NCBI GenBank assembly: GCA_013265495.1
Contig: MU059537.1
Location: forward strand, 124,001-188,000
Direction: 5' to 3'
Length of the DNA stretch: 64,000 nucleotides
From: Vicugna vicugna
Lineage: Eukaryota
Shown here: positions 12,913 to 59,329 of the stretch, in pieces
Numbering within the stretch: the stretch's first letter is position 1
Layout: each line of letters begins with the position of its first letter
Translations under genes and position numbers: made by a program
Notes under the pieces: generated by a model
Database searches by the model: none
Told to the model about the DNA's origin: nothing
Seen by the model: only the letters and a program-made list of their open reading frames with translations

Positions 12913-12985
12913 AGCGACCTGCTGGATGTGAACCAGATCATCAAGGACTTGGCCTCCATGGTGTCAGAGCAAGGAGACGCCATCG
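12913..12985 (+). CDS. TSNARE1: TSNARE1 coding exon, N-terminal half of Qa-SNARE motif, phase 0-1 (73 nt)
   Basis: Acceptor ttgtttccacag|, donor atcg|GTGGGT. Encodes SDLLDVNQIIKDLASMVSEQGDAI plus 1 nt, including the syntaxin zero-layer Q (EQG). In frame with 1810-1968. Confidence 0.93.
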
Positions 12986-14294
12986 GTGGGTACCCACGCC
13001 ATCTGTCAGGCCACCTGCCCCTCCCCCCGGTGTGGGGCTGGGGCGGCTTCTGGGGTCTGAGTGTCTCCCCAGCCCCTCAGGAAGGCCGGGCAAGGGAGAC
13101 CCAGGCCAGAGGTTGGCCCGCCCCTTCTCCTCACTGAGGAGCGCTGGCCTGTGTGCCCCCTGCCCTGGGCCTTCCTCCTCAGCCAGGGGCTCCCCAGGGT
13201 GAGGACCAGCTGTCTGGGGGGCGTCAGACTGCAGTGGGTGCCCCAGCGGAGGGCGCTGGACGTGGCACCACCGTGGAGTGCCGATCCTGCTGCTGATTCA
13301 CCACGTCAGCCACTTCTCAGGAAACGTGGGTGGTGGGGACAGGGCTGTGCAGGACGAGCCGTTGTCCCTGCTGTTCCTTCCACGTGAGAGCCTCCGCCCC
13401 ACCAGCCCGGTGCCCACACCCTGCGGCCATATGGCTTCTCCTGAGCGCCCTGGGCGCCCGAGCAGGAACTCACCACCCTCTGGCCTAGAAGAGTGGCTCC
13501 TGGTCCCCAGAGCCACTTGCCAACAGTCAGCTCCCGGCCAGGACCCCAGGGCTCACCCACCCAGCCTCTCTACCTGTTCCCCGGCTGAGCTGTTGCCTCA
13601 CCAGGGGCCCCGCGGCTGTGAATAAGCCTCTCGCCTCTCAGCCTGGGTGCCGTGGAGCTTCTGAGGTCCAGGCATGTGCTGTTCCCTGGCGGGCAGCCCA
13701 GCCGCCCCCCTGCCCTAGGAGGGCGACTGGACAGGGTTGGGCCGTGACGCTGGCAGGCTTGTCCTCGCTCCCACGGGATCCCGCTCCTCAGCCTGGGCAG
13801 CTCCAGTGGGACCGCCCCGTCACCCCTTCACAGCACCTCTTGCAGGACCCCCACCTCCACCTCTGGCTGGCTGTCTTGGGGCGGTGTATGCAAAATGCTT
13901 TGTACACTCCAGATGGATGCCCCGGTGTCTACAGATGGTCACTCAGTCCTGCTCCTGGACGATCAGGAAGGGATCGTCTCCCGGTGGGGAGGTGGAGAGG
14001 GCTGACCTGCTGCAACCGTGTAGGGGCCCGGCGGAGGGGTGGGCACCTGGGGACCAGAGTAGCCAGGAGCCAGGACCCCACTGCCCCCTGATGTGGGTGT
14101 TTCTAGGGTGATGGACGTTGGGCTGGGGCCACTGTACCCTCTCCAGGGAGCAGTGGGGGCCTGGGACCAGGATTCTGGGGGTTCCCTGCTCTCCATGGCC
14201 CGTCCCATCTGCTGCCCACTCAGCCTCTGGTGCCTTTCCAGGGTCCAGAAGCAGCCAAGCCACATGCCAGCGGAGCTCCAGCCCCGAGCCGGCC

Positions 14295-14700
14295 ATGGCG
14301 GCCCTGCTGTCCGGGCCGGGCTGCGTGCCCCTGCGGCCGAGCTCCCACTCCCGCACCAAGACCCGGAAGCCCAACTTCAGCCCCCAGGAGACAGAGGTGC
14401 TGGTGCAGAGGGTCACGCGCCACTACCCGCTGCTGTTCGGGGCGCTGCGGGGCCCGCCCGCCCGGAAGCATCGCGTGTGGAGCCGCATCCTGCAGGCGGT
14501 GAACGCACTGGGCTACTGCCGCCGGGACCTGGGCGACGTCAAGCACAAGTGGCGGGACCTGCGCGGCGTGGTGCGCCGGAAGCTGGCCGAGCGGCCCCGG
14601 GCCCCTGGCCCTGTGCTCACGCCCGTCGAGCGCATGGTGGCCGAGACCTTCGCAGTCCCGGGCCCCCCGGGCGAGGGCCAGGCCGCAGAGCTGCTGCCAA
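14295..14700 (+). CDS. Myb/SANT-like (Myb_DNA-bind_5-type) DNA-binding domain coding exon nested in a TSNARE1 intron; the exon probably starts at 14242
   Basis: Kozak gccATGg at 14295. Encodes RKPNFSPQETEVLVQRVTRHYPLLFG...RVWSRILQAVNALGYCRRDLGDVKHKWRDLRGVVRRKL...LTPVERMV, the pattern of MYPOP/NAIF1/TSNARE1-type Myb domains. Perfect donor ccaa|GTAAGT at 14700/14701 (phase 1), acceptor gcctttccag| before 14242, CpG-rich codons. Confidence 0.85.
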
Positions 14701-17700
14701 GTAAGTGGCCCCTTCACCGCCTGCAAGGGGCTTCCAGCGCATGACCGCCGAGAGCAAGATTAGGGGAGAGCGGAGGCCCCTTGGCATCTAGATGGGGGCA
14801 TGGAGGCTCAAAACCAGGGAGTGCAGGAGCTGAGGCTGAGTCAGGTCGGCCCTGGCCCGGGCTTGGGGGCATCTGGGGTTGTCCCATGTGACAGTGCGGC
14901 CACCAGCCTCCAGAAACCCACAGGAGCTGAGGTGCAGGTGAACCGCTGGACTGCTCGTGGAAAGCCGTCACCAGCCCAGCTCAGCTCAGCTCCCTGCCCG
15001 CTGTGTGCCCTATCTTGGGTGTAGGGGAGGGAGTAGGGGTGACCGCACCCTCCCTCTGACCCCCTCATTGTGGGGGCCCCTCTCCCCGGGTCGCAGCCCC
15101 CAGACCAGGCCAGGCCCGAGCGCTATCTGGAGGCTCTTAGCTTCCTAGGGCAGGCTGATCCCCTCGGAGCCCGTGGGCCCACCTCCAGGGCCCACCTTTT
15201 CAGAAGGGTCTGTACCTGGTGAAGAAGACGCGGGTGGCACAGTGCCTCTGACTCCGGGGCAGGGCTGGCTCACTCCTGCCGCCTGCAGCGCCTCCTCCTG
15301 CCCGCTCCGCCTGCTCCTCGTCCTCCTCCTCAAGACACCTCTGAACCTCGTCAGGAGCGCCCTTCCCCTGCTGTCTGCATGCAGCGGCTCCGCCCACAGC
15401 TCAGAGCTGAGTCCTGCTGGACCCTTCCCCACCCCTTCCTGGGGAGCTGCTGGGAAGACTGAGGATGAAGCCAGAAGCAGGACCACCTCCCTCTTGAGGG
15501 CTGCAGAGTGGACAGCAGGACTCAGCCTCGTGGGGACAAGCAGAGGCCCCAGATGCCACCAACAGAGGCCCCAGCAGACCTTCTAGTGGGGGGTCTGTGC
15601 AGAGCAAGCCTGGGCCAGTCAGAGATGCAGGCAGACCCCGACGTGGCCGTGCCCTGGGCTGGGCTTGGTCGTGGGCCTGAATGATGGGGTGGGGTGGGGC
15701 CCGCCTGATAGTCCTGGGGAGGCCACCCGCTCTCCTACAGGCATAGCCAGACCTGGTTTTGGGGTGCTGAAGGGCGGGCAGCGGGCAGCATGGGTGTGGC
15801 CCTGGGTGCTCCGACCTTCCCATGAGCCCCCAGCCCTGGAGTGAGGTGGGAGCTTGCGACTGCGCTTGTCCCCTGGGTGTGGTGCTTGGCTCGGAAGGCT
15901 TCCTGTCCACCCTGGTGGGCCAGTGCCCCCTCCGCCAGACCCCATGGCTCCCCTCCCGGGCTCTCCTCCATCAGGGCAGCCAACCGGCTGGTCCCTTAGT
16001 GCTGTGAGCTCTGCGGGGAGTGGCCGACACCGTGCCGACGGGTCCTGAGATTTGTTAAATGTGTGAGAGCAACGTGGGGTGAGGCTGAGGCCAAGCAGGG
16101 AAGTGGCTGCAGCGCCTGGTTTTGGGGGTGATGGTGGAGACCACAGCTGGAGGCCCAGCCCCGCCAGCGCTGCCCTCTGGGTCGGCACTGGCCTGGGGCT
16201 GAGGCACGATCCCGGCGTACGGGCATCTCCCGGCTGTAGGGCTGAGGAAAGCCCGCTGGCCGCGTGTAGGGCCCCCCAGGGGTGCCTGTGCCTGGGTTCC
16301 CCCCACTTGGACTGGGCTTTGCAGGGCTGTCCCCGGTCAACCTGGAATCTTTATGACGAGGTGAAGGGGGTGGCCCGCGGCCAATGAGGCGTCAGCACCA
16401 TAGGCCGTGTGGTGGGGTGCCCCCGCTTGCCTGGCAGCCCCCAGGGCCCAGGAGAGGGTCGCTGGCCACGAGCCAGGGGTCTGCTTGTACGGTGTCCCAG
16501 GGTGGAGCCGTGTGTGATCTGGGGGCTGAGCAGATCTGCGATCCAGCCCGGGGGCCACAGGACGTTTGTTCTCTGGGCTGCGTGCACCCTGGCCGCCGGG
16601 GGCGCTTGCCTCTGGGATGTACGCTACCATCAGAGTCAGGCTCCCTGCCGCGGGGCGCCGACTCGGTGCAGACCAGGGCTGGGCAGTCTGAGGGCAGGTC
16701 CCCGCGCAGCCCAGAGCGTGTGTGGTTGCAGGTCAGAGCAAAAAGCCAGCTAGGAGTGTGACCCCAGCTCACGGCTGGCCCAGACACTGCTGCCCGCCAG
16801 GCACAGCCACCTCTCTCTGTGTCGGGGCTCCGCCAGGTTGTTGCCGACAGAGTCTGGAGCACAAGGTAGCTCCTAATCACAGTAGTTGGTGGTGGCAGGG
16901 GCGGGGGCCTGGGTGGGCGCCCTCCCCCGACCCCCCGCAGGGCTGGTCCTGCCTCGGGGCAGCTGCGTTCCTTCTTCCTCATCTAGGCTGGCTGGAGAGG
17001 CACCACGGGAGGCCTGCGCCCCTGGCAGGCGGCAAAGGCACCCTGCAGGCCCCAGCTCCAGGAGGGCCCGCCCACACCCTCTCCTGGTGGGGAGCACACC
17101 CACGGGGCCTCAGGACGCCGAGCCGGGGCGGTTCCCGCCTTTGAGGGGACCTTGCCGGCCTCAGGCCTCGGGCGGCGCCCAGGGGCACAGCTGCAGGAAG
17201 AGGAGTGATTGGAATCCAGCCATTTCTGCCTCCAGAGCTCTGAAAATGTGTGAATTTGGAGGCGTGTCTGCTCTTCCTGGAAGAGTTCATTTCACGTGTT
17301 ACTGCGTCCGGTGCAGTGGCAGCAGCTGGTCTGTGCTGAGGGCGGCGCCCCTGGCTGCGGGCTCTCAGCTGCTCATCTGCGGGCACGGGGCTCTTTCCCA
17401 TTCATTGGCAGAAGACACTGCGCAGGGGGGTCCTCACCTGGATTCAAACCCGGTTCCTCGCAGGGTCGAGTGCCGCAGCCCTAACTCCCCACTGCCCTGC
17501 ATGCCCCTCGGCGGTGGGGTGGGGACGGGTCTGGTGCATGGTTTACATGATGCTGCCTTTTAACCGCTGGCATCGCTGAGCGAAATCTTCAGGTTTCCGC
17601 GGGCAGCCCCTGGACCTCGTCAGCAGCTCAGGTGTGCTGCTGGTGTGACATCTTGGGGGCTGTGTTGACACACCTACCAGGCGAATTCCCTGGTCCCCCA

Positions 17701-18127: not shown

Positions 18128-18210
18128 ATAGTATTGAAGCCGGCCTTGAGGCTGTGTCCTCACACACAGAGGCGGCCAGCGAGCTCCTGGCCGGAGCCAG
18201 CCGGCACCAA
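18128..18210 (+). CDS. TSNARE1: TSNARE1 coding exon, C-terminal half of Qa-SNARE motif, phase 1-0 (83 nt)
   Basis: Acceptor gtcttgatttgcag|, donor caa|GTAAGT. G+AT gives D, then SIEAGLEAVSSHTEAASELLAGASRHQ, completing the syntaxin SNARE heptads in frame with 12913-12985. Confidence 0.93.
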
Positions 18211-21088: not shown

Positions 21089-21669
21089 CAGACGAGGAGG
21101 ACGAGGCCCCCAGCTGCCTGTGGCTGCCCCTGCGGACACTGGATGGGCCGAGCCTGCCCGAAGCCGACCCCCTGGACCTCCGAGGAGCCTACCCTGCTGC
21201 CACTTCCTCACCCTCTCCACCCGCCTCCCCAGCCTCAGCGCCCCCGGCGGCCGCATTCCCTGGGGCTTCCCGGCCCTCGCCACCCACCTCTGTAACACCC
21301 CAGCCCTTGGGGAAGCCCGCGGTGGCCGAGGCCTCAGAGTTTGAGCGGAGGCTCCTGGACTCCCAGCGGCGACAGGGTGCCGTGCTGCGCTCCTGGTCCC
21401 AGCAGCAGAGCACGCTGATGGCCCAGCAGAATGCACTGCTGCAGAGGCTGGCCGAGCAGAGCCAGAGGCTGGCCGACGGCGTCGAGGCCCTCAACCGAAC
21501 GCTGGAGAGGCTGGTGGAGGCCCGCCCGGCCCTGGGTGCCTCGCCCCCCATCCCTGACGGCCCCCTTGGGGGCGGAACAGCCTGTGGGCCGGATGGAGCC
21601 CCCCAGGGCACCCCCACGGGCCTGGAAGTCTTCTCAGGGATGATCCTGAAGGTGGAGGAGGAGGTCTAG
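21089..21669 (+). CDS. Terminal coding exon (acidic/Pro-rich linker, coiled coil/leucine zipper, C-terminal ILKVEEEV*), putative partner of the Myb exon
   Basis: Pyrimidine-rich acceptor tttcctgtctccccctgcTAG|CAG| (starts 21089 or 21092, both phase 1, matching the 14700 donor). Open for 192 codons to TAG at 21667-21669. Contains the heptad L-AEQSQR-L-ADGVEA-L-NRTLER-L. Confidence 0.75.
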
Positions 21670-32219: not shown

Positions 32220-32433
32220 NNNNNNNNNNNNNNNNNNNNNNNNNNNNNNNNNNNNNNNNNNNNNNNNNNNNNNNNNNNNNNNNNNNNNNNNNNNNNNNNN
32301 NNNNNNNNNNNNNNNNNNNNNNNNNNNNNNNNNNNNNNNNNNNNNNNNNNNNNNNNNNNNNNNNNNNNNNNNNNNNNNNNNNNNNNNNNNNNNNNNNNNN
32401 NNNNNNNNNNNNNNNNNNNNNNNNNNNNNNNNN
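32220..32433. other. Assembly gap (214 N) within a (GGT/GAT) low-complexity repeat
   Basis: N-run flanked by ggtgatggtgctggtggtgacggtggtgac and gtggtgatcatgatg. Confidence 0.98.
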
Positions 32434-56525: not shown

Positions 56526-57947
56526 GAGCCCAGGGGGCCGGCCAGAGCAGCCTGGGTCCCAGGGCCCAAGGGACTGGGCTCTGACCCAGGCAGCCTGTGT
56601 CCCGGTCAGTGCGACTTGGAGAGTGGCGGCGGGGCGCCTTGGAGAAACAAGGCATGGGGGGCAGGGAAGAGCTTGTGCCAGGGTTGGCGGTGGCCGGGAG
56701 GGGACTCCGCGTGTGCTAGGGGTGGAGCCTGTCAGACTCACTCATAGATTGGGGTGAGGGAAGTGGGGTCCAGGGTGTCCCTGCAGCTTAGGTTAGGGGG
56801 CAAATTGGATCTGCTTTGGTTCATTCCATCTGAGCCTGGAGGCCCCACCCAACCTCCCTAACCTCTGCCTGGGGCAGGGCAGCTGCAGGGGCAGCAGGGA
56901 AGGGCCGGTGGGCCTGAGTCACACCCAGCTGCCAGGCACCCTCACCTTTTCTCCCTAAACCTCTGCGTTGTCATCAGGCCCTCCCCGGAGTCCTGCCATC
57001 TCCAGATTCTCACCTTGCCTGCCCCCAGCCCTGAGCAGCCCTGCAGAGAGAGGGGCTGGTGTTTTCGAGAGAATCCTGGAAAGGCCTTGCTTCACCCAAG
57101 GGCTGAGCATGCTGGTGGAGCCCAGACAGGCAGCGGAGGCCTTTGTCCACCTTGTCTGTGGCTGTCCAGCATCACAGCACTCAGTACCCAGAGAGCCCAG
57201 CCAGGGGCTGGGGGCTTCCGGCCTGGGCAGAGCCACGTGGCCCCCAACCCCTGGGATTCTTAGGGGGGGCGCGTGAGTAGGGGCTGCAGGAGGGATGCCA
57301 GAAGGAGACCCCTAGGCTGCATGCTTAGGAGGGCACTGGGGGTGGAAAACTGGAGAGGAGGCTGGGGGCAAGGAGTGGGCAGGGAGGCGGCGGGGGTCCA
57401 GGAGGAGCCAAGGACAGCTCCCAGGTGTGTGGCCCTGAAGGCAGGTGGAAGACAGAGCCCCTCTAAGAGCAGGAGAAAGCGGGGAGTCCCAGGCAGGACT
57501 CCTGGGGAGACCGAGCTGGGCAGGATGGGGTGAGGGGTGGGGTAGGCATTTAGGATGCGGTGGCCCCAAGGCCTTGGTGGAGTCTGACCAGGGCCAGGCA
57601 CCTGTGGCCCCAGCAATGGCCAGTCTCCTCGGACCTCTGCTTTGTCATCTGTGAGAAGGAGACTGATCACTGGGGCCCACCCTCCCCGGGGCAAGTCCTT
57701 GCTACCTTATGGCACTGCCCAGTCCCCCGCCCCCGAGGTGAGCAGAGAGGAGAGACCCGCGCTCTGACAGCCCTGCCCGTGGGAAAGCGCTCGACCCCTC
57801 AAGGAGGGTGGCCCGTTGGAGAGAGAGCCAGGCCTGGGAGCCGGCGCGGCCCTCCCCCTGCCCCTGGCCCAGCCTCCTCCCCTGGTCTGGCCGCACCTGC
57901 GCCTCAGCTCTCCCAGCTGGGAGCTGATGGGGTTTCTCGTTTTGCAG

Positions 57948-58028
57948 GTCGGTGCTGTCACCTGGCCTGCATGGACCGCAGAGCTTCACACCTGCCTGCC
58001 TCCCGCCCCTGCGCCGGCCCCTGGCTGA
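57948..58028 (+). CDS. Candidate alternative last coding exon of TSNARE1 (26 aa, no transmembrane segment)
   Basis: Strong acceptor gggtttctcgttttgcag|G. Phase-0 reading VGAVTWPAWTAELHTCLPPAPAPAPG* fits the phase-0 donor at 18210. Overlapping AATAAA hexamers follow 7 nt after the stop. No expression evidence available. Confidence 0.35.
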   Translation, partial: VGAVTWPAWTAELHTCLPPAPAPAPG

Positions 58029-58035
58029 GTCCCCT

Positions 58036-58045
58036 AATAAATAAA
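58036..58045 (+). terminator. Tandem overlapping canonical poly(A) signals AATAAATAAA
   Basis: AATAAA at 58036-58041 and 58040-58045 in otherwise GC-rich sequence not recognised as a repeat. Confidence 0.4.
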
Positions 58046-59329
58046 GTGTCCTCACGTAGCCAGCCACAGCGGGCCCTAGTCCCCATTTGTCATCCGCCGG
58101 CAGATGAGAGGCAGCTTTCTGGCTCTGGGATCCCGAGGTGGAGCCTGGCTATGTTGGGCGGGAAGGTGCGGCAGGGGTGTGATCCTGTGTGTATGCGTGC
58201 ATGTGTGCGTGTGTGTGTGCAGGTGAGGTGGTGACGTGGACATCAAAAGCACGATGGGGGTGGCCCAGGGCAGGAAGCCACCGTGCAGTGACCTGGTGTG
58301 AGGCCCAGGGCCGCGTCCCCCGGCTGGTGCCGCACCCCCCCGGCCCTCCCCACCTGGGGGCTCCCTGCCGTCCCTCCTGTGGGAGGCCAGTCTGCAGTGG
58401 GGTTTGCAGGCAGCTCTGGGGCCCCTGCTGCTCCCAGTGTCAGGTTCTTTGCCGCCTGGTGTCTCTGAGGGACGGGCTCCCCTTCTTCTGCTGGAGTGGG
58501 TGGTTGGGGGAGGCACCCCTAAGCAGAGAGACCATCGGGAGCGGCCCCTGCGGGTAGGTGAGAAGAGCAGGCAGCCCCACTCGGGTCAGCACCCCCTTCC
58601 CAGGAACCCGTAGAGCTCAGGACCTCATGCGGGTGGGGCTGCGCACCAGACCCTCCAGGAAGGCGCAGCCCATGGCCTCCAAGCTCGCAGCCGCTTCTGT
58701 AGGATGCTGCTTCCTGCTCAGATGCCGCCCCCGGCGCCCCCCCACCCCTCCCCGAGTCCTGGTCTTCTGCCGGGGAAGGTTTAAAGCATTCAGGGTGGGA
58801 TCCGAGCTGCTTTGTCTCACAGGTGCTTAAGGTTTTAAGATTCTGTGAAGCTCTGAGTTTTTTCCACACTGTTCTTCCCCAGGGGCCTGAGGAACGCGAC
58901 ACCATTGAGGTGTGGGCCGTGGCAGTGGGCAGGGAGCGGGGGCGGACCCCCGGCCTCAGCTGGGGCCACTTCCTCTGCTCTGCTGCCCTGGCTGCCGGCT
59001 GCCCGGGCCCTGGGGTGTCTGGAGGAGGTGTTGGAAGCAAATTGGATTTTACATGTCCGGCTGCAGGTGTGAGGCGCTCGGGCGGCTGGAGGGGCAGCTG
59101 GAGGAGGCAGCTCTGCCCCTGCTGTGTCTGAGCCACAGTCTGGCCCTGCTGGCCGGGCTCGGGAGGGTCCTCGTGGGGGAGGGGCTCTGCTGGGGCAGGG
59201 CAAGACTGGAATTGGGGATGGAGGGCAGGAGATGGCTGGTTTATTTCTCTCCTGCCCAGCTAGGAAGTGGGAGTGGCAGAGAACACTGGCTCAAGTTCCC
59301 TTTAGTTGAGGTCCCTATGCTGGAGTGAC

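Follow-up and report, generated by a model that had tools for sequence, protein, structure and literature searches.

A Myb exon between exons 11 and 12 of TSNARE1

The DNA analyzed here, referred to below as the window, is a continuous 64-kb stretch of the Vicugna vicugna genome, which contains a run of 214 N at positions 32220-32433. Exons of TSNARE1 were mapped by tblastn with TSNARE1 proteins as queries against the window, and a Myb exon was found to sit between exons 11 and 12 of this gene, on the same strand. Hereafter, the N-terminal Myb exon of TSNARE1 is named Myb-N, the window exon is named Myb-C, and a third, different Myb exon is named Myb-D. The features of the locus are the following.

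~1804-1968, + strand: TSNARE1 exon 10 region (tblastn)
12913-12985, + strand: TSNARE1 exon 11, SNARE motif, ending in phase 1 (tblastn); the upstream splice partner of Myb-C in RefSeq models
14226-14243, + strand: Myb-C acceptor element TGGTGCCTTTCCAG/GG (side-by-side DNA comparison), phase 1, with the TTTCCAG/GG junction at 14241/14242
14242-14700, + strand: Myb-C exon, 459 nt, phase 1-1 (sequence and splice sites)
14295-14297, + strand: in-frame ATG in a good context (GCCATGG), lineage-specific and not a conserved start
14364-14588, + strand: match to PF13873, Myb_DNA-bind_5, residues 24-98 of the 135-aa peptide (hmmscan)
14436-14444, + strand: location of the two-codon deletion (6 nt) found in every Myb-C (DNA alignment, protein alignment A2 and counts)
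14701-14706, + strand: Myb-C donor GTAAGT, CCAA/GTAAGT after base 14700, phase 1
18128-18210, + strand: TSNARE1 exon 12 (DSIEAGLEAVSSHTEAASELLAGASRHQ), phase 1 in and phase 0 out (tblastn)
21089-21669, + strand: coil exon, phase-1 acceptor, stop TAG at 21667-21669 (sequence and tblastn)

The Myb-C exon codes for a pre-Myb extension, a Myb/SANT-like trihelix domain, the LTPVERMVAETF helix and a 16-codon tail. Between 14295 and 14699 of the forward strand its translation is free of stops over 135 aa, starts with MAALLSGPG and carries the motifs RKPNFSPQETEVLV, RVWSRILQAVNALGYCRRD, KHKWRDLR and LTPVERMVAETF. This peptide matched PF13873 over profile positions 1-77 of 78 with a score of 71.2 bits (E 7.1e-20), the gathering cut-off being 21.7 bits, and the donor lies 16 codons past the TF motif. 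Translation and splice-site inspection thus agree with the original prediction, which had described these peptide blocks, KHKWRDLR included, and a phase-1 donor shortly past TF. The blocks that it had given for human Myb-N (RKPNFCPQETEVLV, WSRILQAVNALGYCRRD, KHKWRDLR and LTPVEQVVAKTF) were likewise found in TSNARE1 proteins, among them those of alpaca (P0224, residues 30-193) and Homo sapiens (P0232). The coil exon encodes an acidic stretch, a proline/serine-rich linker, a long leucine-zipper-like helix and the tail FSGMILKVEEEV, and it is orthologous to the coil exon of Xenopus, caecilian and turtle.

No Myb match other than that at 14274-14699 was obtained in the 64-kb window with TSNARE1 proteins as tblastn queries, and the same search places the Myb-N exon outside the window. 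A transmembrane exon was not found in the 64 kb by tblastn and motif scan, and a candidate last exon at 57930-58070 (acceptor TTTTGCAG, a short ORF, AATAAATAAA) does not code for the transmembrane tail of TSNARE1.

Myb-C in TSNARE1 gene models

When segments 14295-14700 and 21089-21669 are joined, they encode 328 residues that are 100% identical to the C-terminal 328 residues of the Vicugna pacos RefSeq TSNARE1 isoform X1 (P0224, 742 aa), in which the complete Myb-C exon corresponds, again identically, to residues 397-549. The same alpaca protein also contains Myb-N at residues 30-193, which rules out that the window exon is the only Myb exon of TSNARE1; its location 3' of exon 11 speaks against this as well. 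TSNARE1 isoforms with two Myb domains are modelled by RefSeq across eutherians and marsupials, and isoforms with Myb-C are modelled in turtles. The junction of exon 11 to Myb-C is present in RefSeq models of dozens of species, and the order exon 11, Myb-C, exon 12 is common to the turtle and mammal models. On the basis of these models and of conservation, Myb-C is probably an alternatively used internal coding exon of TSNARE1, and its splicing would be expected to occur in alpaca itself.

Selection and predicted structure

The dN/dS ratios of Myb-C among alpaca, a tamarin (L005) and a felid contig (L006), calculated by the Nei-Gojobori method, were 0.23-0.39 over the full exon and fell to 0.11-0.16 in its Myb core, and a value of 0.10 was obtained by the same method for Myb-N. 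When 20 Myb-C plus coil modules spanning turtles to primates were aligned, the Myb domain, the long helix and the C-terminal tail each proved to contain long invariant blocks. Myb-C is under purifying selection, and this selection together with its fixed orthologous position from turtle to mammal would fit a domesticated exon.

From the 20-module alignment, AlphaFold2 predicted short helices at residues 29-41, 43-47, 54-70, 78-98 and 109-117, a long helix at 218-278, for which the pLDDT is about 90, and another at the terminus, 311-326; confidence was low in the Myb region (pLDDT 50-60). The family and the predicted shape suggest that the Myb-C domain may bind DNA and that the protein may dimerize through the long helix 218-278.

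Myb-C is a putative whole-exon paralogue of Myb-N

The two Myb domains of alpaca P0224 are 63% identical over 125 residues (E 3e-51), and the identity of Myb-C to the MYPOP-type protein P0116 is 34-35%. When 1.84 billion representatives were searched exhaustively with HMMER, the best non-orthologous matches to Myb-C were TSNARE1 proteins, aligned through their Myb-N (58-71% identity, E 1e-39 to 1e-31), followed by an uncharacterized tetrapod family with about 50% (47-52%) identity. A maximum-likelihood tree of 53 domains joined Myb-N and Myb-C in a clade with support of 98/92. The proposal that one Myb exon is present in two copies at the locus was upheld by these data, the copies being each other's closest relatives, and Myb-C proved to be nearer to Myb-N than to MYPOP or to the best non-TSNARE1 matches (about 50% or less).

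The exon boundaries also correspond. The Myb-N exon of the muntjac L003 and the mustelid contig L002 measures 492 and 495 nt, against 459 nt for Myb-C; it is equally of phase 1-1, and its donor lies 16 codons past TF in phase 1, at the position observed in Myb-C. The Myb-N acceptor reads CTTTTGGTGCCTTTCCAG/GGCCAGG and that of the window Myb-C CTCTGGTGCCTTTCCAG/GGTCCAG, and the acceptor element is common to Myb-C, to Myb-N of muntjac and mustelid and to a sauropsid Myb-C pseudo-exon. The exon DNA of the two paralogues is 76-80% identical, and the sole similarity between their introns detected by blastn is a match of about 27 nt at the acceptor (85% identity). An intron similarity reduced to this extent is expected of a split older than 300 million years, and it would also fit two captures from one source. 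In the nearest outgroup family, the donor position and phase seem to be the same, since P0041 and P0046 diverge 15-16 codons past TF; the donor position of Myb-N and Myb-C may therefore predate their split and not be specific to the duplication. As judged by sequence, Myb-C is a paralogue of TSNARE1 exon 4 (Myb-N) as a whole exon, splice sites included.

Several observations concern the relatives of these exons. At window positions 14470-14590, the cetartiodactyl Myb-C has residues that resemble Myb-N, WSRILQ and VVRRKL, in place of the WNKILQ and VRKKL of turtles, marsupials and most other orders. Over a 35-nt run in this interval its sequence agrees fully with muntjac Myb-N, and these residues may stem either from changes biased towards GC that occurred in parallel or from gene conversion long ago. 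P0417, an ORF of an ENA contig (190 aa), is chimeric, its first half being ruminant Myb-C and its second half ruminant Myb-N, joined inside KHKWRDLR; either the assembly collapsed over the core, which is nearly identical in the two exons, or the allele has undergone recombination or conversion. The tetrapod family mentioned above includes P0043, P0046 and P0059 (bilby LOC141496098, a skink and caecilian LOC115083954), the Myb domain of which is about 50% identical to Myb-C. Its members have the layout Myb domain, long linker, coil and RGRGRPRG tail, and the family is the nearest outgroup of Myb-N plus Myb-C, with no eutherian member among the matches. The caecilian LOC115083954 lies on the same 825-Mb chromosome record as TSNARE1.

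Age of the split between Myb-N and Myb-C

Every Myb-C lacks two residues after LLFG(A), which are deleted in 152 of 152 Myb-C sequences, those of turtles included, and in none of 168 Myb-N sequences. Both residues are retained in Myb-N, the outgroup family, Myb-D, PRDM11 and MYPOP (alignment A2), and at the DNA level the deletion is a clean 6-nt gap. Because the deletion is common to turtles and mammals, it would predate the amniote ancestor, and Myb-N would have separated before that; the split between the two exons is thus placed before the amniote ancestor, a dating that rests on one indel. The original prediction had proposed to date the duplication from a tree and to find out which copy is older. 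Such a date is offered by the deletion; the tree itself neither places the duplication relative to the turtle split nor singles out a parent copy, since approximately unbiased (AU) tests rejected none of three positions of Myb-N with respect to turtle Myb-C (p 0.35-0.48). Synonymous divergence proved unreliable for dating: the paralogue core has a dS of 0.34-0.60, unexpectedly low and barely above the 0.30-0.36 observed between orders for orthologues, with a GC3 of about 0.9 and 65 core codons.

Among annotated proteins, Myb-C is found in turtles, marsupials and eutherians, and Myb-N in marsupials and eutherians only. Myb-N may have been lost in sauropsids, or may have escaped annotation there, unless it was captured separately. 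A Logan contig (L001:1777-2259, from SRR18112698) contains a Myb-C exon with turtle-like flanks (…NMLTCKRSVTPES…) that is split over two frames, has GC in place of the GT donor and has the acceptor ATTTGGTGCCTTTCTAG/GAACC. This copy seems to be in decay and to belong to a sauropsid other than a turtle.

Separate gene, therian copy or repeated capture

Three other readings of the locus were weighed. According to one of them, Myb-C would be the first exon of an independent, nested Myb-leucine-zipper gene with its own promoter and a start at ATG 14295, which recalls the separate parent Myb-coil gene suggested by the original prediction. The good context of the ATG and the clean 328-aa ORF that runs to the stop are in its favor, as are the stand-alone Myb-coil proteins of tortoise (P0014; Ensembl/UniProt) and the stand-alone Myb-D plus coil proteins of frogs (P0321; RefSeq). 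However, a methionine at this site was found only in alpaca, horse and mouse lemur, i.e. in 3 of about 28 alignable species, and V, A, E or I occupies it in human, squirrel, elephant, rhinoceros, carnivores, ruminants, cetaceans, a bat, marsupials and turtles, so that the ATG is absent from most mammals and from marsupials, and turtles use another methionine. Moreover, the in-frame extension upstream of the ATG (…TC.RS.SPEPA…) is conserved back to turtles. Because the ATG is not conserved, the extension is, and RefSeq joins exon 11 to Myb-C in dozens of species, the conserved use of Myb-C would be that of an internal TSNARE1 exon. A separate gene is doubtful on these grounds, and we consider the nested one unlikely.

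The remaining two readings concern how the second copy arose. Myb-C could have been the parent since the amniote ancestor and Myb-N a mammal-specific copy placed in a 5' intron in the therian stem, which is the direction of events suggested in the original prediction. The presence of Myb-C in turtles and in the decayed sauropsid contig, the restriction of Myb-N to marsupials and eutherians, the length of the Myb-N stem branch (0.53 in the 53-domain tree) and an AU p of 0.35 for a clade of Myb-N with mammalian Myb-C, which is not rejected, are all compatible with such a copy. Nevertheless, the best tree has Myb-N (clade support 98/97) outside all Myb-C, the Myb-C clade with turtles being supported at 80/64, and the two-codon deletion, present in every Myb-C and absent from Myb-N and from every outgroup, would require Myb-N to have regained exactly two codons at the same place, which makes a therian origin of Myb-N improbable. 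Alternatively, Myb-N and Myb-C could have been inserted separately, both from the same Harbinger Myb-like family or from a gene of the LOC141496098 type, and exonized through the splice sites of the source. Such insertions would agree with the end of the Myb exon in the nearest outgroup, which appears to lie at the same place and in the same phase (15-16 codons past TF in P0041 and P0046), with the uptake by this locus of Myb exons of two lineages, D and C/N, and with the lack of similarity between the introns beyond about 27 nt. Against them, the two exons have the acceptor flank, their first bases and the phase at either end in common, which suggests one copied exon, both copies lie within one gene, and the search of 1.84 billion representatives brought up no free-standing copy above about 50% identity; two captures are, in our judgment, very unlikely.

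A probable older Myb fusion at the 3' end of the gene

In turtle and amphibian TSNARE1, Myb-D (RKRKEKFSPVELEILVAEV…) is located after exon 12 and joined to the same coil exon; it was found in frogs, salamanders, caecilians and turtles. The nearest relatives of Myb-D are the Myb domains of PRDM11 and MYPOP-like proteins, to which it is about 55% identical, with a homologous helix. The complete Xenopus laevis TSNARE1 locus (L004, 111 kb) has exons 11 and 12 just about 900 bp apart, a Myb-D exon of phase 0 to 1 and a coil exon with a phase-1 acceptor, and neither Myb-C nor Myb-N was found anywhere in its 111 kb. No Myb-D relic was detected in the window by tblastn (word size 2, E up to 10). Since Myb-D and the coil exon are joined in amphibians and Xenopus has neither Myb-N nor Myb-C, the fusion would be older than both, and we infer that the Myb-syntaxin fusion predates Myb-N and Myb-C and was made at the 3' end of the gene. 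The suggestion that a duplicate Myb exon was recruited to form this fusion did not hold, given that amphibian and turtle TSNARE1 already have Myb-D and the same coil exon.

Taken together, these results make it probable that Myb-C is an internal exon of TSNARE1 paralogous to Myb-N, that the two split before the amniote ancestor and that both were preceded by a fusion with Myb-D. Myb-C would encode a Harbinger-type Myb/SANT-like trihelix domain with predicted DNA binding, and its phase-1 donor would be spliced to the phase-1 acceptor of the coil exon at 21089, yielding a C-terminal module composed of the Myb domain, an acidic linker, the long helix and the conserved KVEEEV tail. This module would take the place of the second half of the SNARE motif and of the membrane anchor. 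A symmetric exon of phase 1-1 would fit any phase-1 intron, and phase 1 is the phase of the intron that follows exon 2/3 as well as of the one that follows exon 11, in Xenopus too. As to the order of events, by the time of the tetrapod ancestor a syntaxin-12-like gene would already have been joined to a PRDM11/MYPOP-like Myb-D and the coil exon, and Myb-D would later have been lost in mammals.

A fuller account of serial Myb capture may be correct, although we would stop short of calling it likely. According to this account, the tetrapod ancestor would have made a fusion protein of SNARE, Myb-D and coil; a second Myb lineage would then have entered the gene in the amniote stem, its phase 1-1 exon being copied into two phase-1 introns to give Myb-N and Myb-C, and mammals would have kept N and C and lost D.

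Relation to known Myb domains and significance

TSNARE1, a high-confidence risk gene for schizophrenia, is also a textbook example of a host gene that has acquired a domain of transposon origin by fusion. Its known N-terminal Myb-like domain corresponds to exon 4 of the human gene (bioRxiv 10.1101/2021.02.09.430442), and a functional paper on human tSNARE1 isoforms describes this Myb-like domain only. In published functional work the protein is regarded as a single Myb-like domain combined with a SNARE domain. The origin of this domain from a Harbinger transposon was proposed by Smith et al. 2012, as cited in PMC9392472 and bioRxiv 10.1101/2021.02.09.430442, and a 2022 survey of Harbinger-derived Myb genes lists TSNARE1 just as a candidate that needs further analysis (PMC9392472). 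No Harbinger transposon copy was present among the Myb-C matches, and the Harbinger assignment follows Smith et al. 2012 as cited in those two sources.

Myb-C shares with the exon-4 Myb the Pfam family, the gene, the exon phases, the acceptor and the donor position, and has it as its closest relative (63% identity within the same species). In contrast, Myb-C lies between exons 11 and 12 and not near the 5' end, carries the fixed two-codon deletion, would be spliced to the coil exon instead of to the Habc/SNARE part, and is present in turtles, among whose annotated proteins no Myb-N was seen. The module formed by Myb-D and the coil exon in amphibian and turtle TSNARE1 resembles that of Myb-C in its locus, in the downstream coil exon with a phase-1 acceptor and in its design of Myb, acidic linker, long helix and KVEEE tail. 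Myb-D itself differs from Myb-C in sequence (24-25% identity in alignment A2, 32-33% over local tblastn matches), in its grouping with PRDM11/MYPOP-like Myb domains, in its location after exon 12 and in its phase, 0 to 1. NAIF1, MSANTD1-4 and the candidates MYPOP and PRDM11 (PMC9392472) also have a Harbinger-type Myb/SANT-like trihelix domain, a fixed position and purifying selection, but they are much more distant from Myb-C (35% identity for the MYPOP-type P0116), and NAIF1/MSANTD-type genes stand alone whereas Myb-C is an alternative exon inside a SNARE gene. The long RefSeq/Gnomon isoforms (X1 of alpaca, P0224; X1/X5 of human, P0244 and P0232), which are automatic models, already contain Myb-C and the coil exon. 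Myb-C is thus already known from public automatic models; no published description of a second TSNARE1 Myb exon or of its tie to Myb-N was found in the literature searched.

A second Myb exon and a coil exon that are under strong purifying selection from turtles to mammals indicate that TSNARE1 probably also makes a nuclear, DNA-binding type of product. The exon anatomy would moreover offer a testable mechanism by which fusions are built and rebuilt, i.e. a symmetric phase-1 exon that moves among phase-1 introns and a shared downstream exon. The accepted history of the gene would also change, the original fusion having used a different Myb exon at the 3' end, and if the serial capture account is true, the fusion would not have begun with the Myb domain studied in human tSNARE1, and the gene would encode more Myb domains than this one.

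The same account would have exon 12 spliced, after these changes, out of frame into the coil exon, with a transmembrane-less tail as by-product. The coil exon can be read in two frames, and frame 0 after exon 12 (21089-21295) reads QTRRTRPPAACGCPCGHW…, in agreement with the end of human isoform X29 (…SRHQLMRRTRPPAACGCP), i.e. the transmembrane-less TSNARE1 tail. The human "exon 13" tail without a transmembrane segment thus appears to be the ancestral coil exon read out of frame, which became possible after the loss of Myb-D (phase 0 to 1). Transmembrane-less tSNARE1 isoforms are reportedly the dominant ones in human brain.
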